The position numbers and the translations under genes were made by a program. A model generated the notes under the pieces. That model did no database searches, had not been told where the DNA came from, and saw only the letters and a program-made list of their open reading frames with translations. From Ministeria vibrans ATCC 50519 (taxonomy: Eukaryota; Protista; Filasterea), in contig CALSCP010002427.1 of NCBI GenBank assembly GCA_943704425.1, forward strand, positions 8,718 to 72,717: a DNA stretch of 64,000 nucleotides. Reading direction: 5' to 3'. Below are positions 9,789 through 63,729 of the stretch, piece by piece. The stretch's first letter is position 1. Each line of letters begins with the position of its first letter.

Positions 9789-9840
<52 letters not shown>

Positions 9841-19073: not shown

Positions 19074-22000
19074 TTAAATCAACTCTTCGTCATCATCATC
19101 GACAGCGCCACCGGACGGCATGGGAACAACTTGGTGCTCCCCACTCAGCATAGACGGCACCGCCTTGGCATCGCTACTCGTATTGGCCCCCAACATGGCT
19201 CGCTCCATTCTGCGCTGACGTTCCAGCTCCACTTCGTGTGCCTCTTCCTCGGGATCCGCCGTAAACGAGAAGACTGGCTGCGACGGTGGCAGCGATGACG
19301 CTGTTGGGGTCGTGACGGGAAGTGGTGGTACACCAGAAACAGCTGTGCGTTGCGTTTGCTCACGGTCGCGTACCCGCGCCATCTCCGCCTCGTCGTCCGT
19401 CTGAAACAACAATACGTCGCTAAATGCCATAATAGGAGCCCGTGTGGGCGGCGGCGAGCGCAGGCGAGGCTTGCTCCGACCCGTGTACTCGCCGTACTCG
19501 TCGTCTTCATCGTCGTCGTCACCATACGCGTAGTCTTCGCCACCGTCGTCGTCGTCGTCGTCGTCATCATCGTCACCACCATCGTCCGACACGTCCGCCA
19601 GCGGTGGCGGCGAGTGCATGCGACGTCGCGGTGCACCCGTGTACCGCTCACCCTCGTCAAAGTTTTCGTCGTCGACAAACACCCCCAGGTCGTCCGTCTT
19701 GTCCTTCAGGGTCTCGTCGCCCTCTTGAATAACGTCGTTGTAACCCATGCGCGTGCCCTCCGCCTCCAGTTCCGCCTTGGCCAGGCGCGCCTGCTCCGCC
19801 AAGTCGCGGTCCGACCCGCCGCCCCGGAATACCGCACCGCCGACTGTGAGCATGGCTGCCTCGCGCGCCGTGTCTTTCACCAGCGAGAACCGTCGCTGGT
19901 AGTTGTCGTACTGTCGCACACTCATGTCATGCATCTGGATCGCCTCGCCGTCAGCCGCTTCCGCATGCAACTCTTGCGTGCTCGACATCCTCTTGCTGTG
20001 CAAGGTCGTCGCCCCGCCACCATTCGCCTCCTCCTCCGCCTTTCGCCGCCGTCGACGCACGCACCAGCACACAAGCAAGATCAGCAGAATCAGCGCCACC
20101 GCTGCAACCACCCCAGCAATTATGGGAATCGAGCCGCTCACTCCCGACGACGAACCTGCCGCAACCGCGTCGGGAATGCACCAGCGCGTAATCCAGTCGA
20201 CAAAACGCTCGCTGTCCAGCGTCGAGCACAGCGCCGTCAACACAGCCTGGTCGCCTCCGCTCGAGTTGGTCAGCGACTGGCATTGCGCCACATACGCCAT
20301 CACTGAGTCGAGACCGTCCGCAAGCGAACTTTGCAGCGCCGTCAGTTGCACACACTGCTGCTCGTAAAAGGGCGCCGCCACCGACACGTACACACCGCAG
20401 TCGAGCGTCCCATTCACTGCATTCACCAGCGCTGCACACTCCGCATTCGCCTCCACTTCGAGCGTCGTATTCGTAAAGGGCACCGCCTCACCCGCACTAC
20501 TCAGCGGCGGCAAATCCACCGGTGCATCGCTCGTCACCCACGTGGGGCTGCTGCTTGACGTCAGTCCCAGTCGTCCAATCGTGGGCGCCACCGAATCCTG
20601 GGTGTCGCTGCCTTGGCCCTCGTCAAACTTGAACAGTGACTCGACGCCCGTCGACGTACCGCTTACACGCGACCCATACTGCGCCAACAGCTGTGTGCTG
20701 TTCAGCGCCGCCGTGTCCCGCACCGTCATGTCGTCAACCTCACCCTCAAACACCCCACTGCCAACGGCACGTCGTCGTCGTCGAAGTGCCTCTGCTGGCT
20801 CGCCAAACGCACCCACAACCCAACGCGAGCCAGGCTGTAGTGCATTCGCATCGAGACTCACCGCCACGGGTCCGTGCACCGCGCGCGCCGCGTCAATCGT
20901 GTACACCTGTAGATCCGAGCCGTCGTCGAGCCACTGGAAGATCACCTGCGTCCACTCGTTCACCGCCATCGCCAGCGCCGTGTCCACGTCCGACGCCGTC
21001 GGCTGGTACTGCACGCGCAACGTCCCACCCTGATTGCTCAGCGCAAATGTCTCAGCATACGACAAGAACACACCACCTGCACCCGCCGTCTCGTTCGTGC
21101 CCCGCACATACACGGACAGCGTCATGCCAGGCGCTGCTCCGAAGCTAAACGTGTTCACCACGTTCACCGACACCGCCGAGCCTTGGCCGTCGTATCGCAG
21201 GCAGAACCCTGCGCCCGTCACGTTCACAGCCACCTCGGCAAACAGCGCCACCGACTCGCCGGCCGTCAACTCAAAGTACGGCGCAAATTGCGTCGCCAGT
21301 GCCTCGGGCGTCACCGCTGTGCCCGTCAGCGTGGTCGACGGACCCGTCCGGAAGTCGCTCGTCGCGTCCCCGTTGCACGAGCCAAACAGTCCCTCAAGCA
21401 AGACGCACTCGTTCAGGGGCACGCGCGACGTCAACGAAATGGTGCCCACGCCGAGTGTGCTGCCCACGCGAAGTACCACCAGTTGCTCGTTGCCGCCCGC
21501 AATTGTGTACTCAATCGTCTTGGTGCGGCGCAGCGTGTAGCCAGCCTCCACCGGCTGCAGTCCTACAGCAGGCGCGCCCGCCACAAGCGTCGTTGCCGTC
21601 CCATTGAGGTACACCGCACCCTCACCCGTCACTTCGACGCGAATCACACCCGCCGTCGTGTTCATCGACACCACCGCCGACGTGAGACACGACGCCTCGC
21701 CACACACACCAAAGCGCCCAGCCATCAGCACCGTGCCGCCGCGCGACAAGAAAAAGTCGCCGAGCGGGAAGAGCGGATACTGCACGCCGTGGTACGTCAC
21801 AAAGGTGCCGCCAGGCGCACTCACGGCAGTCGACGTGGTCGCGTCGTCGGGCAGCCCAATCGTCGCAATGGTGCAAGAGGCGCCACTAAAACCCGTCGTA
21901 CACTCGTCGCACACCTCGCTGCCACGCCAATTGCCCTCACACTCGCAAACACCCGTGTTCACGTCGCACACGCCATTTCCACCGCACACCAGTCCGTTGG

Positions 22001-25000
22001 TGGTGCCCTTGGGACACTCGTTTGCACAGCCGTCGCCCCAGAAGCCAAAGGCACACAGACAAAAGCCCGTGTCCTGCACCGCCGTAATAAGTGCAGGCGT
22101 CGCAAACACCTCTTCGTCGCCCGTGCACGTCGGAACGCCCACCGCGTCGCTTGACACACTCGAAAAACTGTTGCCGGTGGTGTAGCGCACCTGCCAGGCA
22201 ACGGCTGGCGCCGACGCATTCAAGTGCACCACAAACGCATTGGCAACGGTGCCTGCGCGGAACGTCGTCACCTGGCCTAGCGACGCGTCGGCGCCCGTAA
22301 ACCGATTCTGCGCACCCACCGCAATGGAGACCGCGTGCGCATTGTCGTTTGTGTAGCCAAACCAAACGGTGTTGACGGTGCCGTTGGAGCGCGCACAATT
22401 GACGCGCACCGTCACGGGCGATGTACCGCCCGTGATCACTCGGTCAAGCGTCGGGTTAAGGTAGTCCGTGTCGGGATTAATGGCGTCCGCAATGGGATCA
22501 AAGTAGCGTCCCTGGTTTGCAATGCACTGGATCGTACAGTGTCCCTCGCTGTAGTAGTTGGGCGCGCACACGTTGCACGAGTCCCCACCCCAGCCGGTGA
22601 GGCAGACTGTACACCCACCGCCGCCCGCGCCCGGTCCGTCCATCCAGTAGCCTTGCGATGTCGAATTGAAACAGCGACAAATGTCCTCGTTGTCGCCAAC
22701 AGCCTCGCCGTGTCGACAGTGCGTCGAGCAGTCGAGTGGGAAGCCGATGTACTCGTCGAGACATCGGTCACAGTTAGGCGGCGCAAAAAATTGTCCACAC
22801 TCATCGCATGCGGCGCCTCCCTTGCCATGCTCGCACACGCACTCAGGCGCCGCCGCACCCGGCAACAACGTACACACGCCCCGCCCGCTGCACGTTGGCT
22901 CGCCAGCACACACAAGCGTGCTGCAATCGTCTCCGCCAAAGCCAGGGTTGCAGATGCACTCGCTCACCGTTCCATTGCCTGTGTCCGTCACGAGACACGC
23001 ACCGTGATCCGAGCAGTCCGGCTCGCCGGGACAGTCAACATTCTCGCAACGGTCGCCCGAAAATCCTTCGTTGCAGGTGCACGCGAGCACGCCCAGCACC
23101 AGACCACACGTGCCCTGGCCCGAACAGGTCGTCAGACACGACGGTCCACTGTCACACGCGTTGCACACACACACACCGCTGTCCATCGGTTCCTGCACGC
23201 CGTTACACACCGTGTCACATGCCACGCCCATGTAGCCGACATCGCAGTCGCGACACACATGCGGCTCGACGCTGCCGTCACAAGTGCCCCGTCCGTTGCA
23301 GTCAGGCGTGCCCGGACACTCGGGTGTGTTGCAGTCGTCGCCCGACCAACCTGCAAGACACATACACGTTTGCGTTCGGCCGTCGCATGTGCCGTGCCCC
23401 GAGCAGTCCTCCGTTGCGCCAGGACAGCCCGGCCGCTCACACAAATCGCCGCGATAGTCGTTGGTACACACACATACTCCCAGCGTACACGTGCCCTCGC
23501 CGCTGCACTCGGTCGTGCAGCCGGCACCGCCGTAGCACGTGTCGCAAACACACTCGTCGTTTGATGCCGATACAACACCGTTCACGCACGCCTCATCACA
23601 CGCATCGCCCATCCACGGACCCACACAATTGATGCACACGGGCACTTCGCCGGAAGTGTCGCACGTTCCGCGACCATTGCAGTCGGGCGTGCCCGGACAA
23701 TCCTGCTGATTGCAGCCCTCGCCGCTCCAGCCATCATCGCACACACACAGCTGCAAAGCACCAATGCACACCCCATGACCCGAACACGACACGCCCGTGC
23801 CGGGACACGCCTGCTCCTCGCACTGCGTGCCGCGGTAGCCACTCGTCTCAGACGAACACTCGCACACGCCCAGGGTGCACGTGCCTCGTCCCGAACACTC
23901 CACGTCACACGACACGCCCGAGTAGCATGCGTCGCACGTACACACCGTGCCGCCACTCGGACTCGTCCCATGATCACACGGGACCTCACACGCCACGCCC
24001 ATAAAGCCAGAGGCACACTCAATGCACACCGGCTCGGCACCCGATCGGTCACACGTGCCGCGACCGTTGCACTCAGGCGCACCGGGGCAGTCGGCCGAAT
24101 TGCAGTCGTTGCCCGACCAGCCATCCGAGCAAATGCACACTTGTAAAGCTCCCACGCACACACCATGACCCGAACACGACAGTCCTGACACACCCGGACA
24201 TGCCTGTAGCTCGCACTGGTCGCCGCGGAAGCCGCTCGTTGCCGACCCACAATCGCACACACCCACATTACACGTACCGCGCGCCGAACACTCCACGTCG
24301 CACGAGATGCCCGAGTAGCACGCGTCGCACACACACGCGCCCGCCACAACCGTGCCAAAGGCACACGTTGTCTCGCATGCGTCGCCAAAGAAGCCCGCTG
24401 CGCAGGCGGTGCACACGGGCACACCGCCACCGGACGCGTCGCATGTGCCGCGACCGTTGCAGTCGGGCGTGCCGGGACAGTCCGCAGTGTTGCAATCGGC
24501 GTCTGTCCAACCATTGTCACATTGACACTCTTGCGTCTCAGCATTACACGTGCCGTGGCTCGAACACGACACACCGCCCACACCGGGACACCCCTGAAGC
24601 TCGCAGAGACTTCCGCGAAATCCACTTGTGTCCGACGAGCACTCGCACACACCCAAAGTGCACGTGCCTCGCCCCGAACATTCCACCGTACAACCAGCTC
24701 CCGAGTAACACGCGTCACAAGTACACACGTCGCCGCCACTCGGACTCGCGCCATTCTGACACACGTCCGCACAGGCAGGACCCATAAAGCCGACGGCACA
24801 ATCAATGCACGTCGGTACGTCGCCCGCCGTGCTACACGTACCCCGGCCGTTGCAGTTACCACCGCCAGGACACACAGCCGTCGCACAATCAACGCCACTC
24901 CAGCCGACAGAACAGTCGCACTCGCCGCGCGCCTTGTTGCACACACCGTGGCCCGAGCACCCTTGCGGACAGCTCGGCTCGTCACAAAGTGCACCAGTCC

Positions 25001-28000
25001 AGTCGCTGTTGCACGTACACACACCCACCGAACAGGTGCCTTCGCCGCTACACTCCGTGTCACACGTCGCACCCGTGAAGCACGCCTGGCACACACACAG
25101 CCCGTCGACAACGGCACCATTCAAACACTCGCGTCCGCAATCGTCGTCAAAGAATCCTGCGTTGCACGTGCACACATGATCACCTCCGCACACGCCCTCC
25201 CCGCTGCAATCGTTGGGACAAGTCGCCACAGCGCAATTCGCACCGAAGAATCCCTCGTCACACACACATTCGCCAGTCTCGCCGTTGCACACACCCTGGC
25301 CGCTACAGCCGCTCGGGCAGACAGCTTCGCTGCACAGCGTCCCCGACCAGCCATCGTTACAGCCACACACGCCCACTGAACACGTACCGTGACCGCTGCA
25401 CTCCGAGTCACAACCGGCACCCGCAAAACATGGGTCGCACACACATATACCCTCGCTATTGGCCGACCCCGACACACACGGCTCGTCGCAGCCCGTGCCC
25501 ATCCACGTGGGATCGCACGACACGCACAAGCTTGTGAGCGCATCACATGTGCCCTGTCCCGCACAGTCAACCGTGCCTGGGCAATCGGGCGTCGCACAAT
25601 CCGAGCCGGTCCAGCCAAAGGTACACAGGCACGCGTGCGAATTGCAATCACACGCACCGTGGCCCGAACAGTCAACGCCGCCCGTACCAGGACACGCCGC
25701 AATCTCGCACAAACTGCCGCGCCACCCTTCCTCACAATCGCACGCCGTGCCCAAGCCATTGCACACGCCGTGACCCGAACACTGATCACCGCAACGATCG
25801 CCGCCGAAACAGGCCGCACAGCTGCACGTGTCCACATCGAGCGCCGTGCCGCCATTGAGGCAACTCTGTTCACAGCCGTCTCCCAGCAACTCCGACGACG
25901 CACACGTGCACACTGGCTCAAGAGCCGTTGCCGAGTAGGCACACACACCACCCGAACACGCCGTTGGACACGAAGGGGTTGCACAGTCAACGCCCGACCA
26001 GCGCGCATCGCAATCGCACTGCCCGCTCTCCGACACACACGCGCCGTGGGCCGAACAGTCGTTGGGACACGAACGAGTCGTGCACAACGTACCACTCCAG
26101 CCATTGTTGCACGTGCACGTTGTACCCCCACTGCACACACCCTCGCCGCCGCACTCCACGTCGCAGCCAACCCCGCCGTAACATGGATCACACACGCACA
26201 CACCCTGCGTCACCGTACCACGGTCGCAGACGGTGCCGCAGTCGGCGCCAACTCGATCCGCCGGACATCCGGTGCACACGGGCGAGGTCTCTGTCGCGCC
26301 ATCGCATACGCCCACACCACTGCAATCACCCGGGCACACTGGCGTATTGCACGCCACACCCGTCCAGCCGGCGTCACACACACATAATCCCGACGAGGGC
26401 ACACACGAGCCATGGGCGGTGCAGTTGCAGGCGGGCTCGAGACACAGCGTTCCCGTCCAGCCAGGCGCACACACACACGCACTCGCATCACAACTGCCGT
26501 GTCCACCACACTCCGTCTCGCATTGACTGCCGCTGCGGCATGGGTCGCACGCACACGTTTCGTTGCCCTGACACGTGCCCGCCCCCGAACAGAGCGGCGC
26601 GTCCGCACAGCCACAGTCCGTACACAGACACGCGCCAGCATAGTCGCACTCGCTGCAACCCACACACGTATGTTCGCAATCCACACCACCAAACCCAGCG
26701 TTGCATACACACTGGCCAGTACTGTCACACACACCGTTGCCGTTTGTGCACGCCGTCGCGGGACAGTGTATCTCGCACGTCACTCCCAAATAGTCGGCGT
26801 CGCACACGCACGTGCCGTTCGCCCGTGGCGTGCCGTTACCATTGCACACGGGTCCGGTCAGACACACCGACCCGTCACCTCCAACACCCGCACCCACGCC
26901 ACCTGCCGCACCGCCGGTCGCTAGGATACTCACACCCAAATAGGCAAATGCATCACCAGGCGCAAATACCGCCACGCGCCCGCCTGCACCGCCCGCTCCC
27001 TGTTGCGCTCCCGAAACACCACCAGCGCCACCGCGGGCACTCACCGTGCCGTACCCAACAATCTCAAGGGCGTCGAGCCACGCCGAACCACCACTCCCAC
27101 CGCCGCCGGCCGCGGTGGCCGCGACACCATCTACATTCACTTGTCCCTGCACGTCAATGCGTGTCTCCGCGACAACATGAACGGCGGCGCCACCGTCGCC
27201 ACCGCCCGTTGGACCGCCACGACTGCCCGCAAGCAAAGGCTGGCACGCCACTCCGTACGTGCCGCCCACGGTACCTGCCGACTGCGAACACCCCACGCCG
27301 CCAACACCGCCGTGTCCCGCACCCGAACCTCCGCTGCATCCGCCCCCGCCCCCACTGTTGGTGGCGGGCGCCGTGCCGTCCACATCGCTTGTGCCACCTA
27401 GCGTTCCCTGGCGTTCAATCGACAGCGTTTCCGTGTACACCGTCAATGGATCGCTGGCAGTGCACACACCCGCATGCGCAACGCGTACCGTCCCTGCACG
27501 AATCGTACCCTCGACCGTCAGCGTGCCCGATACCACCAGCGACGTGGCAAATGCATGGCTGTTTGCGGCCAGCGTCAGCGTACCAGCCACTTCGAGACGG
27601 TCCACGCCGCGCAAATTACCCTGCACATCCCACGTGCGTGACACAGGCACAGTCGCGGTCAGACTTGCACGGGCACTTGCCGCCGAGTCAAACACCAGCT
27701 CGCCCGTCGCGGCAACCGTCACGTCCACGCCGCGCACCAGGCCAAAGGTAAATATCGTGCCAGCGTCGACAATCACGCGGGAGCCACTGTCGTCACCCCA
27801 CACCTCGTCGACGTCCATCGACGTGCCCTGCACCGTGGCCTGGCCCAAAAGCACAAGGCTCACAAGGCCCACACCTGATTCAAGCGCCACAGTACGTGTC
27901 AGGCCTGCATTGCCATTGTCAATTGTCACCTGCGACGCGTGCGCCTCATACACAGTGCCGCCGCCGCCGGACTGCGCCGACGCGCCATGCTGACCACCCA

Positions 28001-31000
28001 AAGCGGTGAACTGTCCGTACCAGCCGGAGCGGCCACGCGTCACCGTCAGCGACACACGACCACCCGAGCCACCGCCACCTGTCGTCTGGCCCAGACCACC
28101 GTCGCAGCGAAGTACACCTCGGCCAATCAGTGACGAGGCACTCACCAGCACAGAACCACCGGCACCACCACCGGCACGATTGGAAGAGGCAGCCTCGCCT
28201 TGCGCGCCAAGTGTACCATCCACGCGAACCGTGGTGGCATCAACTCGAATCGCTCCGCCTCCAGCACCTCCACCCGAATTGCCTCCACCGCTGCCCACCG
28301 TCACGGGCGTCACCATGGAGCCATACGCAATACCGGCAGCAGGCGAGCCCGTCAACGAACCACCTTGAGACCCGTGACCACCACCACTGGCATTCGTGCC
28401 GTCGCCACCCGCACCACTGCCAGACTGAGCCGCGTCCCCACGACCGTCCGCCTCAATGGTCGCGGTTGCCTCGACAACAATACTCTCTGCGCGCACATGC
28501 ATCTGCGAGACACTCAGTGTCGTGCCGTGACGCACGTCAAGCAGCGACACCGACAGTGACATCGCATCGCCAACGAGCGACACCGTTGCCGTCGACGCAA
28601 GCGTCAACGACGACAGCACAATCGCACCGCCGTTGGTGGTCGCCTCCATCTCGACTGTTGCGCCCCGGCTCACCATCACATGATCCCACTCTAATATTTG
28701 CCCCAACAACGACAACGTCACGCCGTCCACCACACTCGTCAGGTGCGGCAAGTGCAGCAGCCCATTGTCGAGCACATTCACGTTAACTCGCAGCGCTTGG
28801 GCAAGTCCATTCACCACCAGACGCTCCGAGGCGGCCACTTGAATCGAAGCAGTCGTGTCGCCCGACAGTGTCGTCACCGTCAGAACCGTTGAAGCATCCG
28901 CAAGTGTCACCGCAGCCGCACCGCCCAGATACAGAGCGTCGTAGGTGCCGCTTGACATTTCTGTCGTTGCCGAGGCGCTCGTACGTCCTCCATTGTCGAC
29001 GATGACAACCGTCACGGACTCGTGTTGCAGCGCCACCGTGCCCGCTGCTCCATTGTTCGACGTGCCTGCACCGCCATACGCCGTCTGCAAACCAGCGTAG
29101 GCAAGAAGCGTCGTGGCGCGCAGCGACACTCGGCCGCCTCGACCACCATTGTCGCCCGCACCACCGTCCGCACGAATCTCACCAGACCAGCCGTCCACTT
29201 GAGCGGCCGTTAGCCACACCGAACCGGCATGGCCTCCGTCGGAGCCACCGGCGGTCGCCGAGATGCCACTTGCACTCACAACACCATTGATGCGAACGAG
29301 CGTGCCCGCATGAACCGCAATCGCACCGCCACCCGACCCGCCCGACCCACCCGAGCCGCTCGCGCCCAGCTGTGTCGGCTCCAGCACAGAGTCTGTGCCT
29401 GCACCACCCTCACTGCCCAGTTCCACACGTCCGCCGTGCTCCACCGCAAATGTACCGCATGTCACGGCGAGCGACTCGACTCCGACGGCGGTTAGCGTCG
29501 CGCCAGACTCAATCAAAATCGACGCGACCGTCAGCTGTGCCGTCGCCGCACCGTGTCCCATCCGAGCGCCGTCCACGAGACGAAGCTGTGCGTACGTCGC
29601 ATTGCCATCCAACAAGACGTTGGCCGCCGCGCCCACCGTGAGGTATCGCAACGTGCTCGAAATAGCACCAGGCGTGAGCACATTGTCGCCAAGAAGGCGT
29701 GCCGTCGAAGGTAGCATGAGTGTCGCCGAAGCGTTGGTCATGCGGAAACGTACGCCACCCACAAACGGCACGTCGTCCGTCTGTTGCACCATCAGCGTGT
29801 GCGTCCGATCAAGACGAAACATTCCCGTGCCGTCGCCGCCAAGGTGCTGCTCAATGCTGAGCGACGCCGTTTCGTCCGCAAGCAACACATCTGCTCCTCC
29901 GCGCAAATACAGCGCTTGGTACACACCCGCCTCGAGTGGCGTCGTGGCATTCGTGTTCAAACTCGCACGATCAACCACCACCACGGGCGATTGTGCGCCC
30001 GTCTTGGTGTACACCGTGCCCGCTCCACCGTCGCTCACACCGCCCGTGCCACCCACGGCCGTCAAAGTTCCCTCAAAGGTGCCCGATCCCGCAACAATAG
30101 CCACGCGACCTCCTGCACCGCCAAAGGTACTCTCGGCCGCACCATCGACACGCACCGCACCGTCACCAGCAATTCTGCCTGCTTCGACAAAGACCGAACC
30201 GCCCGCGCCACCGCCGTTAGCCTCGCCGGATGCCAACACGGAGCCATCAAGCTGGAACAGTTCACACACATCGACATGTACGACGCCACCGCCATTGCCA
30301 CTTTCACCTCCTTCACCACGCGTCTCCGGTGCCGACATCGATCCGAACGCGTCCGCACCGTCCGCGGCGCCATTCGCGCCGTGAGCCGCTCCACCGTTGA
30401 CGCGTGACACAGCTGTGTCACCGCTTCCACGCGCGTCCACAACAGCCTCAGGCTCGAGCCACAGCCGCTGTGCCTCAAGTGTCAACAGACTGCCCGACGT
30501 GACCAGGGACGATCCCTGTTCGAGGTGCATCTCATTTGTGCTCACTCGCAGGTGTTCGCCCAGTGCATGCGTCAACGTCAAGGTCGCGTCCCCACCCAAA
30601 GTCAGCGAAGCAAAGGTCACATTGCCCGCTTCGGTAGCGTGCTGAACGATGCTGCCACCGTTCTCCTCGACGCGCGTTGTCGCTGTCAGCGCAACATCAA
30701 GCGCCGTCAACACAGTCAGCTCACGCACACCAGTCAGGCAACCCTGCCAGTCATTGGCGGCGGAGGTGAAGCGCACGTGCGGCGGCAATACCAGCTCGCC
30801 GCCGTCCTCAACGTCCAGGCGCCACGGGATGTTTACCGTCAGCGACGTTTGCGTCTCGTGTCCAAGGCGCACACGCTCGCTTGCCGACACCACAAGTGTC
30901 GCCGTGCCAGCGCCCGTAGCCGTTTTCAGCACATCCAGAGTTGCATTGCCTGCCACACTCAGGACGGCCGTGCCCTGCAGCACAATATGGTCCACTTCCA

Positions 31001-52000: not shown

Positions 52001-55000
52001 CTTGATTCACTTGAATCTGTGCTGCCTGACCAACTGTCAGCGCCGTCAGACCCGACACTCGACCTGCCCACAGTTCCCACGTGGCGCCTGTGCCACCAAC
52101 AGCAAGCGTGCTGGGCGACACCAGTGTGCCCTCGTCGTAGACGCGCAGGCTTGTTGGAAACAAGGTTGACGCACCGTCACTCACCGAGGTGACGGTAAGC
52201 GTCTGCGAGGAACCCACATGAACCACGCCGGTAACATCACCTGAAAGCAACGCTGTGGCAATGCTCATGGTGTCAGGTACTTCACTGGCCGTGTCGCTCC
52301 CAAGCACCGAATTGTTCGCCATGAAAGCCAACTGTGCACCCTGTGCCACGTAGAGCACATCAAAGGTGTGCGTCGCGCCGTCTTCAGACTCGAGAATCCA
52401 TGCGGCCGTCGGCTGCTCCGCCTGGTGCAGGTAGCGCTGCGCCACGGGATTCTCGCCACCAAGGAAGACCTGTATTTCACCAAGGGCCGGACGGGTGCCG
52501 CCCGAACGTGTCACCACAATGGTGACGGTTGATGTTGTCTCGTCGACGTACACATCCGTAAACATGCCTGGGGAACAGCCACTGGGATCCACATCGCCGT
52601 CCGTCTTGGCTGTGCTGCCAACCGATACGGAGAAAAGAGATTCGGTCGAGGCGGAGCAGGCTGGGTAGATGCGCACCTTGCGCACGTAGGCGGACGACGC
52701 GAGTGTTACAGTCAGAGTCGTTGTGGCCGATGTCCACAAGGCCCATGAGTCGCTCGTGCTGCCCTGACTTCCATCAAACAGATTCAGCCAATTACTCGCA
52801 CCGTTGCGAATGTTCGACGACGACGAAACTGTGGCAATCGAACCGGGTGCCGTGTATAGCTGGTTGGTGGTGGTGCCGCCACTCAGGTCGAGCAGGCCAC
52901 CGTCATTCTCCATGCGTGTGCCCATACGCGAACTTGTCGCACCACCGTTGTCCACACGCAGTACCTTGCTTGACGCATCCTCGCTGTACACCGTACCAGC
53001 ACCGCCACTCTGAGCTGTACCAAAAGAGGAACCACCCATAGAGCGAATGACGCCTTGGAAGGCGCTACACAACGCTGTCGTACAATACACCGCAACACGA
53101 CCACCTCCACCACCACCTCCCGCCGTCGACGTGGTCGGATCGCCGTTGCCACCATTCGCCGATATCACGCCGAAACCCACCAGCGACCCTGTGTGCACTT
53201 GAACCGAACCGCCGCTTCCTCCGCCACCGGCCGACGACGTGTCGGATGCATTGCCGTCCGCCGAGACAGTGCCCTCCACAAGAAACACCATCGTCACATT
53301 GATGCGAAGGGCACCACCACCAGGTGCGCCTTGCGCCCCACCACCGCCGCTGCCAATCGAAACAGGGAGATATGTGCTGCCGTACGCAAATCGACGAGAA
53401 GTCTGCCACTGTCCCGGACCCCCAAGACCGCCGTGACTGCCGCCCGAACCGCCGTCCGCGTGCGCAAAGCCAGCACCATCACCGGCGCCCGCCGTGTCGC
53501 CACCACCGTTTGCCGACACCGTAGCCAAGCGTGCCAACGAAAACTCCACTGCATCAATGTCGAGTCGATCAGACAAAATGCGGCCGTCACCGCGCACGTC
53601 AATGTAGTCACTGATGAGGTGTGCCGGTGCGTCTTCGTTGGGGGGCACAGCAACACTGAGCAGACTGCCTGCGCCACCCACCACGAGACTGAACGTGTCT
53701 ACTTGTGCCGTTTCGTTCACCACCAACGTCTTGTCGGCACGCACCATCGCTGAATCCTGGTCGAGACGAAGCGACGCGCCACGCCACAACGTCACATTCC
53801 AAGCACCATCAATGACAGTACTGCCTCCCGCCGCATCCACGACGCAGTTGCTCAGTGTCGTCTCGTTGGCAAACGTCAACGTAGCACCATCGTACAAACG
53901 CGTATTGGTGTTGATCGTCAGCGAGCCGCTGAGCCCACTGGCGCCCAGACGCTGGCTGTCTCCAACGTGCAGGCGTCCGCTACCATCCGAATAAAACTTG
54001 GTGAATGCCAACATCGAATTTTCACCCTCCATTGCGAGATGCGCCGAGCCGTTCACGTGAAGCTCGTCGACAAACAACGTCTCACCGCCAACAAGCCAGG
54101 TTCGACCGCTGTCCACGTCGAGCGACATCCAGTCGGCAACATCGTCGGACGACACGGCATTTGCAGCGCCATTGTTGTCCACAAGCAGACGCGTGTGACT
54201 CGCAGCCGACACGAGCGTCTCGCTAGTGTACACCGTACCCGCACCCCCACTGCTGCTTGAGCCAGACGATCCCGTGTGTCCCGCACCTCCAAATGCACGC
54301 AGCGAACCCGTAAAAGGCTCGACACGTGCATTTTGAGTCGCATAGTACACAGCCACACGACCACCGGCTCCACCACCGCCGGGACGTGCGCTGTTCGCAT
54401 CACCATCGCCGCCGTCACACGACACACGTCCCACACCGTGCAATCGGTTTGTCTCCAAGTACACGCTTCCACCACTTCCGCCACCGGCACGCGGCGATTC
54501 GCCCACACCGCCATTGGCGGAAATGACACCGTCAAGAAGCACTGTGGAATTCACTTCGACCCACAAACGACCACCACCTCGTCCGCCTTGCGAGCCGCTG
54601 TTTCCATCGCCGCCGGGACTGCCCAACGACACGGGGTGCGTCACGCTGCCATATGCAGCGCCCACAGTAGCCTGCGCCGCACCACTGCCACCGCGTCCAC
54701 CATGTCCCGCACCACTGGCGCCCGTCGTCGACGCCACCCCTGCACCGGCACTCGAATCCCCGCTTGCAAAGCCAAGGGCGTCTGCATTCAGACTGCCGCC
54801 GGTGTGCACATGCAATTGGTCACACAGAAGGCGCAAAGCCCCCGAACGAATCGTGCCGCCCGATTGCACCTCGATCGTGCCCGTGGTCACCAGCGTCGCC
54901 ACGTCGTCCAGCACCACGTCCACCTGGAAATCAATCAAGCCCTGATTCTCAACAATCACGTCGGCCCAGCGCACAACAGGAAGCGCAGCCGTCTCACCAA

Positions 55001-58000
55001 CAGTCTGGACCGTCCGTTCAATCACCACAGTGCCATTGGCGGCCACAATAAGACGTTGGGGACCGGCCAGATCGCCACGAAGGTGCACAGTGACACTGGG
55101 CGCCACAACCAGGCCTGCCGTTAGGGACAGTCTACTTCCCTGATACGTCTCCAAATTGACTGCAAGCAGTGCGTTCTCCTGCGCAGCAACGTCCACACCG
55201 AGATTGAATTGCTGGCCGTAGCCCACGTGCAGTGTTCCCGACCGGTCGCCCTCCACACGACCAACGTTCAGAGTAAAACTCAAGGTCGCGTTGAATGCGG
55301 CCACGTGTGCCCCGTTGAGAATTTGCAATCGATCCACACTGACACTCGCAGCCGCCAAGTCGGTGAGCCATGTGCGCCCCGAGTCATCGTCCAAGACCGC
55401 GTACGACGCAATGAGTGCAGGACTTGGACTCGCCTGCGCCACACCACCATCGACCGTCACCACAGTTTCGCGCTTAAAATACACATCGCCAGCAATGGTT
55501 TCCTTCCGCAACCTCGCTACGTATATCGTACCCGGTCCGCCTGGCTGAGCGTCACTTCCGCTGCCTGCCGCGCCGCCATAACAGGTGCTGGTCCCGTTGA
55601 ATCCAAGGAGAACACGCGAGGCGGCCGCCAGACCTTCGGCACTCGAGACGAGCTGGTCAGCGACGCCGTCGCCCACGAGCGCAATGCGTCCACCACCACC
55701 GCCACCACCGCCACTCGACAAACCTGCACCGCCATTTGCTGAGAGCGCACCAGCGCCCGACAGCCACCGTGAGGCAGTGACAAAAAGCGAGCCGCCCGAG
55801 CCGCCCCCAGTATTGCCCGAGGTCGCATCTTGGCCGTTGACCGAAATGGTACCGTCCAGAATAGCATCGCGACAAGATACGAGAAGGTAGCCGCCGCCGA
55901 GCCCGCCGGAAGCGCCTCCGCGGCAACCCGGCAAAATCGGGCTGGTAAGGCTACCAAATGCAGCGGCTACAAGCGACGCAGATGCCGAGCTGCCAAGGCC
56001 GCCCGATCCGGCGTGACTCGCCCCAGCAGACGACGTGGGCATCGCCCCACACGAATGATCGGCTGGAGTTATGGTGACAGTTGCCTCAGCGTCAACCATG
56101 AAAGACTCAGCGGCCGTGACATTGAGCGACGCAAACGACACGGAGGAGCCGCCGTGAAAGCGAACAGACGTGGTAGACACTACAATCAGACCCACTGTGG
56201 TTCCGCTGAGACTTGTGGGCACCTTCATCACAGCCGTCGCTTCGACCGTCAATGCACCCAGTACAAACATGCCCGCGGGTGACCCAACCGTCGCAGCAGT
56301 TGTCACGTCAACGTCAGCCGTGCAACCAGCACCCAACGTCCACCGTGCGCCCGAAGGAATAGTGCCTGCCAACACCAACTGACCATCAGCAAAGGTGAGA
56401 GTGAGAGAGTCGGGCCACGACAGATCGCCAGTGGCGTGCACAAAAACACTAGTGCGCAGTTGGCTGTCATCGTCCCGCACAGCAATCACGGCCGTCTGCG
56501 ACGTACCCACATGAAGCGCCCCAGTTCCATCCGTGTCCATGTGATTCGTCACAGTGAGAAAGGCAGCGCCAGTGAGCGTTGAGGCAATGTGTGCTCCGTT
56601 GTACAGATGCACTTCGTTAAAACTGGCAATTTCGGTAATCCAAGTGCGACCACCGTCAATATCCAGGGCCGCATAGCTAGCAATCTCCGTTGAGGTAGGT
56701 ACAATACCATTGGCATCAACCAAAAGCGTGCGGTTTCCACCGCCACCCAGATCAAGTACCACCGTTCCCGCACCTCCACCCGAGCTGCTTCCACTGCCGC
56801 CTGCAACACCACCAAATGCCGAGTACTGGCCCAAAAAGGCTACATTGTCCGCGTACATCAGGTACACATGACCACCCGCTCCGCCACCACCCAATGCCAA
56901 GCCAGCGCCACCGTTCGCCGAGATTTGCCCAATGCCACTCAGCGTGCCCGCGTTCACCACAAGACTACCACCGCTGGCACCCCCAGCATTGCCGGCGGTC
57001 GCAGCACCACCGTTACTTGACACTTGACCGTTGACGGTGAGACTGGTGGCAGCTGTCACACGCAAAAGGCCGCCACCAAGGGGAGCGGTGGCGCCTCCGC
57101 CGCTACTGCCAAACGTCGCAGGTGTCCCCAACGACCCATACGCAGCAGCAATTGCTGCCGAGCCGCCTCCGCGACCGCCCTTGCCTGCGTGACTCGCACC
57201 CGAACAGCCCGATATCTCATCGGTGGTGCCTGCAGCGCTGCCACCGCTCGGTGCAAGGGCGTCGGCGCGCAGAAGCCCGGCAGCGTCGACAGTGATCACA
57301 GGGCAGGTGACAGTCAGAGTACGACCTTCGACGACGCCACCTCCACGAATCGTGAGTGACGAAGTGACTGCAAGTGTCCAAACATCCGACGTGGACGTAC
57401 TCGAGCCACAGGTGATGGTACCGCGATCACGCACCTCGAGCGAGGCGAGTGCGAGTGTGCGCGAGGAGGCTGACGCGGACAGCGTCAGCGTACTCTGATC
57501 GTCCACGATGAGCTCGGTCGACGGACCGCTCCACGTGCCGTACACAGTTACCGCACGCTGCAGCAAGTCGACACGGGTCGGAGGTAGGTTGAAGACGCCG
57601 AGAGAATAGATGCGCGGGGCGAATCCAATGCGATAATTGGGCGACATGGGGAAGCGAGCAAGACGCTCATTTACCGTAAGCACCTGCCCATTGTCAACGT
57701 GGACGACACCCGTGTCGTCTCCCACGAGCCAATCCACGGACACCTGAGCAGTCGCCGCAAACACTACGTGCGCGTCACCACGAAGCACCATACGCTCAAA
57801 CGAAAAGGCCACGGAGCCAAAGTCTGCAGTGAGCCAGGCGGCTGCTCCCTCATTTTCGACAGTCACAAAGACGGTCGTGTCAGCTACAACGGGCGCTGAG
57901 CTCTGTGCGTCTACAACCAGCGTGCGGTTTCCGCTCACTTCGTCCAACAAAAACAGCGTACCCGGACCGCCCACCGCACCACCCCCGCTGCCGCCAACCG

Positions 58001-61000
58001 AGAGAAGCGAGCCGGTAAATGTGGCAATGGTGCTGCTGTAGTACACGGCCATGCGACCGCCCGAGCCACCGCCGCCTGCCGGTGCAATACCAGCACCCCC
58101 CGACACCGAAATGGTGCCTGAGCCCGCAAGCGAATCGACGTTAAGCCAGATGCTGCCACCGCTGCCACCACCATCGTTTGCGGCCGTTCCATCGCCGCCC
58201 GACGCGGACAGCGTGCCGTCCACGGTGAGAGTGCTGGTCACATTGACAATAATCCAGCCACCACCGGCACCGCCACTGCCACCGCCAGTACCGCCCGCCG
58301 AGCCAAACACATGCGGTGCACGGTAGGAGCCGTAGGGAGTACCGCCCGGTGCCGCCGCACCAACCCCCCCTCGTCCGCCAAAACTGCCCCCAGACGCTCC
58401 CGACACAAAGGACGCGCCCAAGCCAGTGCCAGAGGAGGCAAACCCAGCGCCGACGACCGACACTGTGCCCGAAGAGGTCACCTGTACGTCGGAACTGACG
58501 ACGGTGAGCGCGTGCGCCTCAAGACGCGCATCGCTCTCGACAATAAGCGCGGCGCTCAGTCGCATTTCAAAGTCGTCCGTCTCGGTCACCGCGCTGCTCT
58601 CAAGCAGCACTACACTGTCGTTGCGCACCATAAAAGACTGGAACTCGAGCGTGCGGTCGGCACTCGATGTGAATGTCGCGGTGGCATTGTCAAATGCCAG
58701 GTTGCATGGAAGACCATCCATATTGCCACGCACGTCTATTGACATGTGTGAAAAGCTCACCAAGAGAGCCGTCAGCACCAGATTCGACGCGGCATACACT
58801 TGGGGCTGGACCGGGAAAACATTGTCACCGGCGGTCGTAAGATACACGTCGTTGCTCACGGTCCAAGTCGTGCTGGGACGAATGTGGAGCGTGGACGAGC
58901 GGTCGCCACTGAGTGTCGCCGTCGACACAGAGAGGGCATCGTCGTCGACTGACAAGTGGGCACCGTTGACGAGGCGGACCTCGTCAAATGTGTACAGTGT
59001 CGCGAGATTCACGCGCGACAAGTAAGTTGCCGCACCGCTCGTGACGAGCGTCGACGTGTACGACGAAGTCTGTACAATGGCCGAGAGACGCGAGCCGGTG
59101 TCCACCGTCAGCGTATAAACGGGCGACCCCGGGTAGCTCGTCACAACCAAACGTGTGCCAGCACCGCCATTCTCAGCGGCTACGCCGCCGCTGAGGCCAC
59201 CTCGCGCGTTGAGAGCGCCTGTGAATCCGGCGACAGACGTTGCATAAATGGCCATGCGACCGGCTGCGCCGCCACCGCCATCACCAACAATTGCTGCATC
59301 ACCACCGTCCACCGTTAGCGTACCAGCGCCCGTCAGTGTCGTCGCAATGAGCCAGAGCGAACCGCCTGCACCGCCACCTTCACCAGTCGAATTGCCAGCA
59401 CCGCCTTGAGCGGTCACCTCGCCTTCAATGGTAATCGTCGTCGTGGCGTTGAGCAGAAGATGTCCGCCGCCTGCACCGCCCACGGCGGACGGGCCTACAC
59501 CGCCACCGCCCCCACTGCCAAACAGCGTTGGCTCAAATACACTACCGTACGTCATGCCTGCAACTGCCCCCACGCCCGCACCGCCACGTCCACCGTGACT
59601 TCCGCCGCTACCACCCGACGGTGCACCGGTGCCTGCGCCCGAGCCGGTCGTCATGCCTGCCGCAGCCACGGTGACAAGTCCGCCTGCATCAACGGTGATG
59701 TCGGCAGCGTGCAATGCAACCGCGCGGCCATCGAGAATACCACCCGAGTTGACGGTGAGGTGTCGTGTGAGGTGTACTTGCCAAACATCGGCATCGTTGT
59801 CGACAATGCCGTCAAAGGTGAGTTGACCGCCATCCTCGACGGTGATACTGCCAAGCACCACCGAACGCTCGCCAGCAAGCGTTAAGTGGGTGCCATTGCG
59901 CACGACCAAATCGAGGTTGGGCGAGTTAAGCGAGCCGCACACAACAAGACTGTCGTCAACGTTAAGTTCTATGGGAGGCAGGGTCAGCGACCCGTCGTCG
60001 TACACCACGGTCACCATGGGCATCGTTGTCGTGGGCGTGGTTGGAAAAAGGAACACATTGCGCGTCACAACTATGTCTACGTCAGTACCGACGTGGAAAT
60101 ACCCCGAGTTGTCGCCAATCAGGTTTTGCGCCATCAAAGCGGTACTCGCCTCGAAAGCAAGCTGTGCGCCTCCCGTCACCTGGACGGTCGTCATGTTGTA
60201 GGTGTCGACAGGCACGAAGGTGATGCCACCATGCGAGAGCACGTTTGAATAAACACACTCAATCGTCACGTTCACAATCGCATCGCGATTGTCAACCAGA
60301 AGAGTGCTGAGCGAACCGCTCGCAAGGACGACAGTACCCGCACCGGCATTCTCTCCAACGCCCATACTGAGACCTCCAAAAGCAGACGCTGTCACGGCAA
60401 AGGTGGTCTCAGTGGTCACCGCAACGGCGATTCGTCCGCCACCACCCCCACCGCCAGCGCCAAGACCAGCGCCACCCGAGGCAGAAAGAAAGCCACTTCC
60501 AGCAAACAAATCGGCGTCGATGTCAATGGATCCACCTGAGCCACCACCTGCGCCGGGCTCAGTCGCATCTAATCCATCTACGTGAATAGCACCGTCCAGA
60601 GTGACGGTGCCCGTGGAAGACAGACGGAATTTTCCACCGCCCAGGCCACCGCCGGAGCCCGAGGCAAGACCTCCGCCCGACCCAAACGAAAACGGTGCCA
60701 AAAGGCTACCGTAAAAGTCGCCATAGTCCGAAGGTACTGCACCCGCACCTCCTCGTCCACCGTGCCCAGCACCGCCAGCGCTTGTGGCGTGTGCGCCGCC
60801 AGGAGCGAAGCCAGTGCCGCCAGAAAATCCGCGGCCAGCTGAAAGAATCGCGGACGAGGCATCAACGGAAAAAAAGCCTGCGACAACGTCCAGAGCACGA
60901 CATGAGATGTTGCCACCGTTTGAAAGTGCTACACCGGTCGTTGCACTGATTGTCCACACATCTGAATCGTTTTGGGACGAATCGAGAGTCAACGAAGCAG

Positions 61001-63729
61001 TGGCCGTCGTAAGCGAGAGAGTCCCCAAAGAAATGGAACGGTCGGCCGTTGATGTGAAAATTACAGAAGCAGAATCATCCAAAGACAGAGACGCAGAAGG
61101 ACCATCAAAGTTGCCGAAGACAGTCAAACCAAATCCAGAAACAGACACTGACGCGGGCGGCAAAACAAAGTTCCCGGATGCGTAAATCCACGGAATCACT
61201 CCAAGTTCGTCGTTGACCGACCCCACCGACGATGACACACTTGTGATAATCGACAGCGTGAGCGTAGACGGCACATGGATGTACCCGCTCTTGTCGCCCA
61301 CCAATACGCCAACCGACAATGCCGTCGTCGACGCATCCGCCACAACAACTGCATTGCTCGACACAACAAGTGCATCCACCGACGCACTTGTGCCAAGATC
61401 CGACGTCAGCACTGTCACACTGTCCCCTGCGGCGACAAACGTCGCGTAGTTTGACTGGAGCGACAAACTCACCGTCGCGCCAGCATTGATCGCAGAGAGT
61501 GTCGTCGCGCCACTTGTCTCCTCGTAAATCGTACCAGCTCCACCTGGCTGACCTCCGCTCGCGGGTCCACCGCCAACAGCACTCAGACCGGCAAACGTCG
61601 ACGCAGTCGTCGCATACACTGCAATACGTCCACCACCGCCTCCGCCAGAGTTCGCCGTTGCCCCACCAGCACCGCCATTTGCAGTCACACTGCCCGAGCC
61701 AGCCATCGTCGCGCACTCAATCAAAATCGATCCGCCAGATCCACCGCCACCAAGGCCAACACCAGCACCGCCATTGGCGGTCACACTGCCGTCCACAGTC
61801 ACAGTGTTTCCACGCGCATCAATGTACACACGGCCGCCACCACGGCCTCCGCTGGCTCCACCACCACCCGAACCAAGTGACGAGGGCATCAGCGTATTGC
61901 CATACCCTCCGCCACCATTCGCCGAGTTGCTACGCCCGCCAACACCGCCGTGTCCGCCGCCAGAGCCGCTCGTGTCGCCCTGCCCGCTGCCGAGGCCTGC
62001 AGCAAAGCCCAAACTTGACGCAGTTATGCTGGCTGCACCACCTATGGTAACATCTCCTTCGGCGGAGATGTTGAGCGAGGGTGAAGTGATTGCCGCTCCA
62101 CCGCTTAGCGCAAGAGTGCTGGCTGTGAGAATGGTCCAGTCGTCGGCCGGCGTGCCGTCTGTGTTCAGCACAAGGTGTCCTGTTGCGGAGACAACGCCAA
62201 GAGTGTTGCAGTGAAATTTTCGATCCATGGCGGCCATGTCGAACGTAATAGTGCACGACGGACCCACCGTCAGGTCGGTACTTGGGCCGTCAAAGTTGCC
62301 ATATACCGTAAAGGAAATCCCGGTCGCGGTGACAGCGGTCGGCGGAAGAGTGGTTGTCGCCGTCGCGTAGATTTGCGGAACGACGGCCAAATTGCTGTTG
62401 CCGCCCGCCAGCCCTTGTTGTGCCGCAACCGTGACCGTGAGCGACGACGTAGGACTGACGTGTATTACACCGGACAGGTCACCGCGAAGGGTCCCAATGG
62501 AGAGTGCGTCACCGCGCGGGAGAGCAACGTGTGCGCTTTGCAAAATGTCGAGAAAGTCGATGGTGTGTGCGTTGGGTGCGATGGTTGCCCAGGTGACCAC
62601 GCTATTTGTCTCGACGGCAGAAAAGTCAGACGATAAACTCACCCCCGATGCCAGCAGGTTGTTGTCAATGACGAGGCGCGTCTGACTGGCACCATTGTAG
62701 AAGACAGTGCCGGCAGCGCCGTTTCCCGCCGTGCTCGCTCCGCCAAAGGCCGAGGCGACGCCCGAAAACGTTAGCGTATCATAGTCAAGGCGAATGCGCC
62801 CGCCTGCGCCACCACCACCCGTGGTGCCGTCGCCAGTGCCACCGTTTGCGGTCACGCTTCCGGCACCAGCAAACGTGGCACACGTGAGCCAAACGCTGCC
62901 GCCAGAGCCGCCGCCGCCGTCGCTGGAGCCCGCAGCACCATTGGCGGTGACCAACCCAGCAACGGTGAGCGTGTCGAGAACTGCGACACGAACAAAGCCA
63001 CCGCCCGCGCCGCCGCCCGCCACGCTACCATTGCCACCGCCGCTGCCAGCGTACACGGGCAGGGAATAGTTGCCAAAGGCGACGCCAAGAGTGCTGGTGC
63101 CTGCACCTGGACCCCCGGTGCCGCCGTGACCGGCACCTGAGCCGCCTGCTATAGACGAGTCGCCCGATCCAGGACCTGCCGCAGGCCCGTGGCCTCGAGC
63201 GTCGGCAGTGAGGATGCCTGTCGAGCTGATACTCAGATCGACGGCGTTGATGGTGGTCGTGAGACCCAGTTCCAAGTCGACAAGGACGTTGACTGTCCCG
63301 TCGATCGTCAGCGACGAGTAGTTGTGCGTTCCCAGCGGCATGTCGCACGTCGAGCCAAACGCAACGACGACGTTCGCCGTCGTTGTGTCGCAGTCGACGC
63401 CCGCCACCAGTGCCGTCGCCAAAGACAAAAGCACCAGCGCATTGACAAGCAGTCTAAATTGCACGCCACACGCAGAAGCGGTGTGCGGGGGGAGGGAGAG
63501 GAGGGGGGTCAGGAACAGGGGGTCAGAGAGACGAGGAGACAAGGGCACGCGAGCGGGCGCAACGGACAAATGCGTGTTTGGGCGCGAACCGGAAAAGGAT
63601 TCATTTAGACAAAAAAAGAACATCACAAAAAAAAAACGCTTAGCATTGAAGCGCAGAAGGCCGCTCGATACACTCCTTAGCAAGACGTCGTATGCACGCA
63701 TAATAGCTGCGGCGGCGGGTTGGGTGCAT
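19074..63729 (-). CDS. Giant type I transmembrane protein (~14,803 aa): signal peptide, ~30 glycine-rich modules, EGF array, VWD, LamG/pentraxin-like, C8-like, TM, acidic cytoplasmic tail (predicted exons 63729-63698 and 63453-19074)
   Basis: Stop-free frame of >44.7 kb (ORF track 19074..63818). The proposed splice gives MHPTRRRSYYALLVNALVLLSLATALVAG-VD (signal peptide). Periodic Gly-rich motifs, many N-x-S/T sequons, Cys-rich EGF repeats (~26850-22500), TM IPIIAGVVAAVALILLILLVCWCV (20129-20058) followed by RRRRRK stop-transfer. The start and exon 1 are inferred; the body of the ORF is certain. Confidence 0.92.
22500..26850 (-). repeat. Protein-level array of tenascin-type EGF repeats organised as ~10 four-unit super-repeats
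   Basis: CSGHGxC...CxCxxGWxGxxC units. The marker CxCxxC(Y/F/R/D)xGxxC recurs ten times at ~130-aa spacing. Confidence 0.92.
26860..63400 (-). repeat. Protein-level tandem array of ~30 diverged ~400-aa glycine-rich modules
   Basis: Recurrent order GxGHGGxGG / YG...PxxxGSxGG / GGxGGG / VxGxxxAxG / GGGSGGS(V/I)(W/Y) / GGGGGR(I/V)A / GGAGTVY / LxVDN / GDxSGxxHV...Q. I count 30 GxAGT-type end motifs. Confidence 0.92.

Follow-up and report, generated by a model that had tools for sequence, protein, structure and literature searches.

A 64,000-nucleotide stretch of the genome of the filasterean protist Ministeria vibrans ATCC 50519 (assembly GCA_943704425.1, contig CALSCP010002427.1, positions 8,718 to 72,717 of the forward strand; hereafter, the window) carries on its minus strand a giant nuclear gene that is transcribed and spliced, and whose product, at least 14,796 residues long, is predicted to be a type I membrane protein with a signal peptide, a single transmembrane (TM) segment and a basic stop-transfer sequence. 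Most of the protein consists of diverged glycine-rich modules, each predicted to fold as a right-handed β-solenoid with no specific solved relative, and these are followed by an array of EGF-like units, a small unnamed domain, a divergent VWD domain, a LamG-like region, the TM segment and a long cytoplasmic tail (Table 1). By analogy with proteins of this fold class, and with somewhat better than even confidence, we read the protein as a very long surface fibre that would keep a surface for binding or coating at a distance from the membrane, either attaching the cell to substrate, to prey or to its neighbours or forming a coat.

The single uninterrupted frame proposed by the first-pass annotation (made from the letters of the window) stands: the minus-strand frame at 19074..63818 runs without a stop for 14,914 codons from its first GTG, at a G+C content of 60–65% and with a constant negative GC skew over its entire length. 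A stop-free frame of 44.7 kb cannot arise by chance at such a base composition; it is practically impossible. The translation is dominated by the residues that had been pointed out (Gly, 17.4%; Ala, Val, Thr and Ser, approximately 10% each) and includes 46 lysines in all. Lysine makes up 0.25% of the ectodomain, versus 1.5% and 3.4% in the two adjoining genes of the window, a 6- to 14-fold depletion that agrees with the annotated lysine poverty and would fit an exposed, protease-challenged surface. N-glycosylation sequons, in contrast to an earlier description of them as dense, number 106 versus 89 ± 8 in shuffled sequences, which is a mild excess.

The start of the protein differs from that first proposed, at 63729, and an intron turns out to split the signal peptide. 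In-frame ATGs at residues 40 and 66 lie 55–80 residues before the sole N-terminal hydrophobic stretch, and the DNA between the first ATGs and this stretch is pyrimidine-rich and closes with tttAG. Public DNA and RNA contigs were compared with positions 58001–64000 of the window (the 5′ 6 kb of the gene). RNA contigs from a polyA RNA-seq run labelled ‘marine metagenome’ (X5) and from run X1 track the gene to 63454 and then extend for 180–182 letters that are absent from the window; DNA run X8 is unbroken across the same position, and depth in X1 is 3.4 upstream of it (in the intron) versus approximately 210 in the exon, that is, approximately 60 times lower. In reverse complement, the letters outside the window read ...TTCAAC ATG ACC AGC C, and a 30-mer from them occurs once in the assembly, on the unplaced contig C1662, where exon 1 (242 to ~421, minus strand) comprises 5′ UTR and then ATG ACC AGC CG and gives way to gtaagtg, a canonical GT donor; no further ATG occurs in the approximately 180 nt ahead of the exon-1 ATG. 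The mRNA therefore begins with a short exon on this unplaced contig, and C1662 therefore belongs in or beside the run of N (window ~64003–65010) just upstream of the gene past the window end, in the same orientation. Splicing exon 1 to window position 63453 gives the signal peptide MTSRLLVNALVLLSLATALVAG and a protein of 14,796 residues, so the annotated signal peptide and length of approximately 14,800 residues survive the change of start. One X1 RNA contig, 14.5 kb long, follows the gene collinearly as far as window position 61210 and, taken with the splice at 63454, it establishes real transcription; expression, which the first-pass annotation had left to be checked, is thus seen in X1 and X5 for the 5′ 6 kb. 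Within intron 1, summed depth at 63801–64000 rises to 27,549 in X8 (flanks approximately 132) and to 2,026 in X1, which points to a high-copy repeat beside the assembly gap, one that probably explains the gap.

Table 1. Features of the giant gene and its product in the window (window coordinates).
Feature	Position	Strand	Details
Exon 2	19074..63453	-	44,380 nt; all coding sequence but the first 11 coding bases; stop codon 19074-19076
Intron 1, 3′ end	63454..63640	-	Pyrimidine-rich tract; acceptor tttAG (AG 63455-63454)
Signal peptide, exon-2 portion	63396..63453	-	(MTS)R LLVNALVLLSLATALVAG, then VDCD; putative cleavage site
N-terminal cap, residues 142-194	63237..63395	-	Precedes the first module; outside the module HMM matches
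β-Solenoid module array, ~30 modules, residues 195-12339	26802..63236	-	A half, HMM ~1-240 (Gly-rich); B half, ~240-382
High-depth segment of module 2	61186..61971	-	10-30x read depth; joint with period 1173 nt = 391 codons
Stretch with three extended modules	45765..53543	-	51837-53543, 48765-50414 and 45765-47447; ~150-190 extra residues each; split HMM matches
EGF-like array, ~44 teneurin/tenascin-type units	21834..26801	-	4-unit (390-nt) super-repeat in part
Small unnamed (‘FGYxN’) domain, residues ~13759-13875	22194..22544	-	Wedged into the EGF array; no Pfam match
Divergent VWD, residues 14005-14158	21345..21806	-	Ends in GLFGSCNGDATSDF; Pfam E 0.075; collinear with a Ptychodera exon
LamG/pentraxin-like (concanavalin-like) region, putative	20664..21221	-	RRRRR loop 20769-20783 (residue 14346); aligns downstream of the Ptychodera VWD
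Cys-containing juxtamembrane region (‘C8-like’)	20175..20501	-	Named from the Cys pattern alone; unconfirmed
TM segment	20058..20129	-	IPIIAGVVAAVALILLILLVCWCV, then RRRRRK; weak Pfam matches to single-pass TM families
Cytoplasmic tail, 327 aa	19077..20057	-	Acidic (77 D+E); poly-Asp runs; two YTG..R..SPPP motifs

An iterated hidden Markov model (HMM) resolved approximately 30 full modules of 370–425 residues (typically ~385), plus a few partial ones, over residues 195–12339, with approximately 11 residues between most of them; against the final profile (A1) the full modules score at E values of 1e-55 to 1e-112. In the alignment of 26 full modules on which A1 is built, identity to the first module is 26–40%, all 14 invariant columns are glycine and a few further columns are near-invariant P, S, R, T or D. 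A histidine within SGG-x-HGG-x-GG (A1 columns ~55–60) is retained in most modules amid this mostly glycine conservation, and may belong to a metal site or a cap. The modules showed no DNA-level similarity to one another in a self-comparison of the window, which marks the array, as assembled, as old and diverged, in agreement with the earlier description of roughly 12,000 residues of strongly diverged Gly-rich modules; the sole internal DNA repeats of the window are those of the EGF array (70–73% identity at a 390-nt offset). The otherwise even tiling of modules is broken at window 40776–41021 by an 82-residue spacer (residues 7600–7681), which has no BLASTP similarity to residues 141–195 that would make it an internal copy of the N-terminal cap. 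Discoidin inserts were considered for the three extended modules and rejected: F5_F8_type_C_2 (galactose-binding-like) matches weakly, at E 0.078, in one of the three, and the F5/8-C domain of a Saccoglossus module protein matches nothing here. Across the modules, no Pfam family reached threshold, including lyase and hydrolase families and the ALK glycine-rich region, and NCBIfam gave no match; G8 (PF10162) came closest, with a best score of 22.5 bits against a cut-off of 22.9 (E 5.7e-5), below the gathering score, in 2 of the 26 modules.

The array had also been taken to be free of repeat-assembly problems, which holds for expansion, of which there is no sign, and not for collapse. At 61186–61971, within module 2, the summed depth of contigs goes up 10- to 30-fold, both for DNA (run X8) and for RNA, and contigs are interrupted at either edge; several variants coexist, with the segment present as a single copy in the assembly. 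Contigs from X5 and a further RNA run, X6, pass from 61186 through 387 other letters and return to 61971, so that the period of 1173 nt equals the length of one module. Alternative continuations found in the reads at 61221 and 61186 are not found in the assembly, and short module-bearing contigs (C930, C2734 and others) were rejected as the missing copies, sharing DNA similarity in patches of only ~30–100 nt. The simplest reading is that these are probably young, near-identical tandem modules collapsed by the assembler; if the collapsed copies belong here, some thousands of residues would have to be added to the protein, although an unassembled paralogue could hold them instead. A separate contig joint, found in X8 and X1, leads from 58076 to 59580 and skips 1,503 nt with 21 letters on one side; it was rejected as an intron or deletion and is most likely a repeat-induced contig join at a short word common to two modules.

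AlphaFold2, run on one module with the 26 modules as alignment, returned a confident model (predicted local distance difference test (pLDDT) 91.7, predicted template modelling score (pTM) 0.91) with long strands every ~34 residues in the Gly-rich A half and short strands every ~20 residues in the B half, from which the module is predicted to be a right-handed β-solenoid. Foldseek found no match in the PDB at E ≤ 0.001 (best E 0.16), and every candidate was a β-helix. A structural aligner placed tapirin C-terminal domains at the top (Z 10.9 and 10.5), followed by the Pet passenger (10.2), the serine-rich repeat protein (SRRP) of L. reuteri (9.1–9.3) and TibA (8.6), with Ag43, Hap, Fap2, pectate lyases, tailspikes and the TMEM2 ectodomain lower down; a profile search of PDB sequences with the modules matched only the SRRP binding region (E 0.004). 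The polyproline-II (PPII) springtail antifreeze protein (AFP) 7jjv also aligns, to model residues 65–213 in the Gly-rich half (Z 7.5, root-mean-square deviation 2.6 Å over 107 residues, 26% identity), and DSSP assigns long β strands to this stretch of the model. Known glycine-rich PPII helix bundle domains are few, among them those of snow-flea AFP, the ALK/LTK glycine-rich domain, phage S16 gp38 and Obg (bioRxiv 10.1101/2023.11.25.568672).

The module belongs to a very large family. A search of 1.84 billion proteins with its profile gives 14,710 cluster representatives at E ≤ 1e-3, of which 4,622 still match at E ≤ 1e-30, and 44 of the 255 retrieved proteins carry at least two full modules with both halves (A+B). 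Full tandem modules occur in the animals Saccoglossus kowalevskii (XP_077861759.1), Ptychodera flava, Diadema antillarum (XP_071498054.1) and Solemya velum (KAL5010959.1), as the first-pass annotation had suspected in recalling similar motifs from marine invertebrates, and also in the amoebozoan Cavostelium apophysatum (EukProt), in environmental contigs and in metagenome-assembled genomes of Binatia, Patescibacteria and Auribacterota. Outside Ptychodera, these proteins hold 2–7 or more tandem modules at 30–35% module identity and are shorter than the protein described here (1.3–5.2 kaa); that of Saccoglossus carries an F5/8 type C domain in addition and matches G8 weakly, and in those from bacteria the modules are accompanied by FN3, CARDB and similar domains. 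The A half alone (HMM ~2–240, 35–50% identity) occurs in 7–9 tandem copies in proteins of approximately 2,000 residues (~1.7–2.5 kaa) from Planctomycetota and Verrucomicrobiota, which lack the B half, carry other accessory domains (Ig, carboxypeptidase-regulatory-like or dockerin), are annotated as ‘beta strand repeat-containing’, ‘carboxypeptidase regulatory-like’, ‘dockerin’ or ‘Ig domain’ and include no characterised member. Foreign modules reach at most ~35% identity to any module of this protein. With every glycine masked in both query and target (phmmer, Z = 1e6), matches persist at 2.5e-23 to a planctomycetotal protein (P0013), 4.1e-31 to one from Solemya (P0032) and 1.9e-17 to one from Ptychodera (P0124), and the similarity is thus not a glycine artefact.

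Further module genes lie on other contigs of the M. vibrans assembly itself (29.7 Mb in 2,860 contigs). Contig C2494 (21,294 nt) is one open frame of 7,098 codons from end to end that encodes the same module, which is also found on C1386 (14,602 nt), C2418, C949, C2736 and C2159; so the genome appears to hold at least two more giant paralogues, partly assembled. Short contigs of 447–690 nt also occur as pairs of equal length with near-identical module-fragment matches (C930/C2734, C2191/C1187, C204/C1969, C672/C1791, C552/C542 and C2425/C1576), and these are probably either haplotypes that were left uncollapsed or debris from repeats in other module genes.

C-terminal to the modules, the region from residue ~12340 to ~13990 contains 265 cysteines and approximately 44 EGF-like units, close to the 40 first counted, with Pfam matches to EGF_TEN (1.6e-96), EGF_Teneurin (7.9e-77) and EGF_2 (5.8e-40). 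The domains beyond were compared by tblastn (query, residues 13690–14600) with a locus of the acorn worm Ptychodera flava, in which an exon at the same relative position as the small unnamed domain is 30% identical to it over 131 residues (E 1.8e-11); this is the domain first noted by its FGYxN motif. For the VWD domain that had been annotated next, the direct Pfam score is below threshold (PF00094, 13.8 bits versus 22.9, E 0.075, profile positions 8–152 of 156). The C-terminal VWD motif GL.G.CNGD...DF is present, and the GDPH motif is absent from the protein. Residues 13914–14344, comprising EGF, VWD and the following region, align with Ptychodera at 23% identity over 452 residues (E 1.8e-22), and the aligned Ptychodera exon itself matches Pfam VWD at 1.7e-11 (45.1 bits); the VWD call thus has good, though indirect, support. 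The LamG/pentraxin-like assignment likewise found indirect support and no Pfam match to LamG or pentaxin: it is plausible from the Laminin_G_3 annotation in Ptychodera and from the named ESM Atlas neighbours of the region, all of which are Laminin_G_3/pentaxin (0.86–0.87; a lead only). The C8-like assignment was not confirmed: neither C8 nor TIL, which a vWF/mucin D assembly (VWD-C8-TIL-E) would have at this point, matched in Pfam after the VWD even at E 10, with the LamG-like region standing there instead, and an AlphaFold2 model of the VWD–LamG–C8 region from a two-row alignment, helical in tendency at the C8-like stretch, was unusable (pLDDT 31.5). Word-indexed searches with this region, alone or within a 2,575-residue parent, returned no homologue, within the limits that such searches set on length and shared 5-mers; comparison with PDB sequences gave chance-level matches only, and the VWD–LamG cassette has no paralogue elsewhere in the M. 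vibrans genome, including its other module genes. The TM segment and the tail of approximately 327 residues are as first described, with a basic run directly after the membrane and an acidic tail in which Pfam recognises no domain.

Among the retrieved module proteins, that of Ptychodera (XP_070533134.1, with two downstream gene models; GCA_041260155.1, CM083799.1) is the only one to match the EGF array as well. There the same modules, ~35% identical to those here, are followed by EGF_TEN/EGF_Teneurin arrays and, in the order seen in M. vibrans, by the small unnamed domain, EGF, VWD and a LamG-like domain. It differs in being an animal gene with introns, annotated as three models, with far fewer modules in the model seen and, in the 6,778-residue downstream product, several VWD/Laminin_G_3 repeats; the locus is uncharacterised and gives no function. 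The three models lie on the same strand and touch one another at CM083799.1:2259465-2287885 (1,810 residues with modules and EGF; 772 with EGF; 6,778 with EGF, VWD and Laminin_G_3), and appear to be a single giant gene that annotation has divided. The architecture, which the first-pass annotation could not assign to any characterised protein, is undescribed in that the module has no counterpart among characterised proteins or curated families and literature searches found no description of the module or the whole, yielding background on PPII bundles, giant bacterial genes and G8/β-helix proteins; it is less singular than it had seemed in that the family is huge and the C-terminal order is collinear with Ptychodera. 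The family is very large yet outside Pfam and NCBIfam, and the architecture is uncharacterised but not unique, with parts of known kinds: a β-helix adhesin-like rod, EGF, VWD and LamG.

Better-known proteins resemble it in part. Bacterial β-helix adhesins (tapirins 6n2b/4wa0, SRRP 5ny0/5nxk, Pet 4om9, TibA 4q1q, Ag43 7koh, Hap 3syj and Fap2 9qe7) share the fold class and, by analogy, likely the working principle of a long stiff solenoid with a lateral binding face. They show no significant sequence relationship to the modules besides that of SRRP (E 0.004), and the modules have coils of unusual length (~34 residues) in their Gly-rich half; in Pfam, no β-barrel translocator, two-partner secretion (TPS) domain or LPXTG anchor was found here, and a eukaryotic single-pass TM segment follows EGF, VWD and LamG instead. 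Fibrocystin/PKHD1, PKHD1L1, CEMIP and TMEM2 are likewise large surface proteins with β-helix regions; the TMEM2 ectodomain β-helix aligns to the B half of the module (Z 8.5), and some ESM Atlas neighbour clusters of the modules carry G8. Those animal proteins lack a tandem array of 30 modules, and the protein here has no IPT/TIG or PbH1 match. The EGF units strongly match the Pfam families of teneurins and tenascins. Teneurins have type II topology, with the N-terminal domain inside the cell, and carry NHL, YD-shell and Tox-GHH, and tenascins carry FN3 and fibrinogen domains, whereas the protein here is predicted to be type I and Pfam scans of it found none of NHL, YD-shell, Tox-GHH, FN3 or fibrinogen.

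These features suggest how the protein could work. The ~30 modules, each with ~13–14 coils of 4.8 Å, would stack coaxially into a stiff rod of an estimated ~0.2 µm, to which the ~44 EGF units would add a semi-rigid spacer of ~0.1 µm, for a whole fibre of ~0.3 µm. Near the membrane would sit a cassette of the unnamed conserved domain, EGF, the divergent VWD and the LamG-like region with its polybasic RRRRR loop, a putative cleavage site; one TM helix would anchor the fibre, leaving the acidic, proline-motif-bearing tail inside the cell. Binding may occur along the flanks of the β-helix, as in the bacterial adhesins. We favour a role as a fibre because the nearest folds are adhesins and polysaccharide-binding or -cleaving proteins, because the modules have no conserved catalytic set, because their surfaces are strongly diverged and because lysine depletion is typical of an exposed, protease-challenged protein. 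The long, rigid, membrane-anchored filament envisaged in the first-pass annotation accordingly gains support from the confident module solenoid, the adhesin-type folds and the predicted type I topology.

Alternatively, the fibre might be a passive coat or spacer, forming a dense glycocalyx- or theca-like layer, without a specific ligand, that would hold surfaces apart or shield the membrane, as membrane mucins do or as PKHD1L1 does, which has been described as a coat protein of stereocilia (PMC6707252). Extreme length, a uniform rod and very low lysine would all suit such a coat, as would appreciable expression in X1 (contig depth ~210) and at least two further giant paralogues, and the subthreshold G8 matches and the TMEM2 alignment point the same way. 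The nearest folds, however, are mostly those of binding proteins, the modules are strongly diverged rather than homogenised, which fits varied binding surfaces, and the long structured tail and VWD/LamG cassette exceed what a coat needs; we regard a purely passive coat as possible but rather unlikely. An improbable reading, though not a negligible one, is a surface receptor or mechanosensor in which tension on the fibre would act on the VWD/LamG cassette, RRRRR would be processed and the tail would signal to the cytoskeleton. A polybasic RRRRR in the LamG-like region and a second basic run after the TM segment, together with a 327-residue tail bearing duplicated YTG...SPPP motifs, speak for it. 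So does the position of the VWD, since juxtamembrane VWD domains are known in cleaved receptors and mucins, for example MUC4 and RGM. Against it, the GDPH autoproteolysis motif is missing and the cleavage is putative, and Pfam scans found no GAIN, SEA, kinase or other signalling domain.

Two further explanations fare less well. The modules might be a tethered array of polysaccharide lyases or hydrolases that digests prey walls or matrix, given that the pectate-lyase-like right-handed β-helix is a common enzyme fold and that the matches at Z 7–9 include pectate lyases, tailspike depolymerases and alginate lyases/epimerases. But no lyase or hydrolase family matched in Pfam, the columns that are invariant in 26 modules are glycine and the near-invariant P, S, R, T and D form no consistent catalytic set, and thirty diverged copies point to a structural role, which makes an enzyme array very improbable. 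That the gene is an artefact, whether of a contig that is chimeric or wrongly assembled or of an open frame without function, is scarcely credible: the assembly is indeed fragmented (2,860 contigs), with a run of N directly upstream, a collapsed repeat at 61186–61971 and paralogues broken at contig ends, but a chance stop-free frame of this length is practically impossible, independent DNA (X8) and RNA (X1, X5 and X6) contigs from several studies match the assembly on both sides of the repeat, splicing yields a proper signal peptide and the domain order recurs in Ptychodera. Our ranking therefore places adhesion or capture of prey or substrate first and a passive coat second, with a receptor or mechanosensor and an enzyme array well behind.

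Several points weigh against the favoured reading of an adhesive or coat-forming fibre. Its function is read entirely from a modelled fold class and the architecture, and the fold matches are middling (Z 9–11, Foldseek E ≥ 0.16), at the level of fold class and with no specific relationship. The galactose-binding-like inserts that could have lent ligand-binding support do so weakly, in one extended module of the three, and the membrane-proximal region gave an unusable structural model. The assembly is probably incomplete at module 2 and has a run of N inside intron 1, and we infer a single transcript reaching the TM segment and tail from the open frame and one 14.5-kb RNA contig. The remainder of the window holds two ordinary eukaryotic genes, both on the minus strand: one at 9078–17477, encoding a 2,799-residue protein with NOV_C and a sacsin-like region, and one at 606–4040, encoding a 1,144-residue RasGEF.

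A bolder reading, which we consider rather doubtful in its entirety, is that the module is an undescribed β-solenoid, with polyglycine-II-like segments in its Gly-rich half, conserved from Planctomycetes–Verrucomicrobia–Chlamydiae (PVC) and candidate-phyla bacteria to amoebozoans, Ministeria and deuterostomes; that the whole cassette (modules, teneurin-type EGF, the unnamed domain, VWD, LamG and TM) would be an ancient, pre-animal surface fibre surviving in hemichordates; and that, with its collapsed modules restored, the protein could exceed ~18,000–24,000 residues. If true, a protein beyond that size would be among the largest membrane proteins known.

With function still an inference, the biological weight of these results is as yet potential. 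The locus offers a worked example of a giant, near-single-exon gene that begins on a different contig and had its newest repeats collapsed in assembly, and a very large unnamed family gains a confidently predicted fold and a eukaryotic example with 30 diverged copies, suited to the building of a family model. A protist and acorn worms share one order of domains, in which a bacterial-adhesin-like rod is joined to matrix and receptor domains of animal type, and this arrangement is relevant to the question of how animals assembled their extracellular toolkits.

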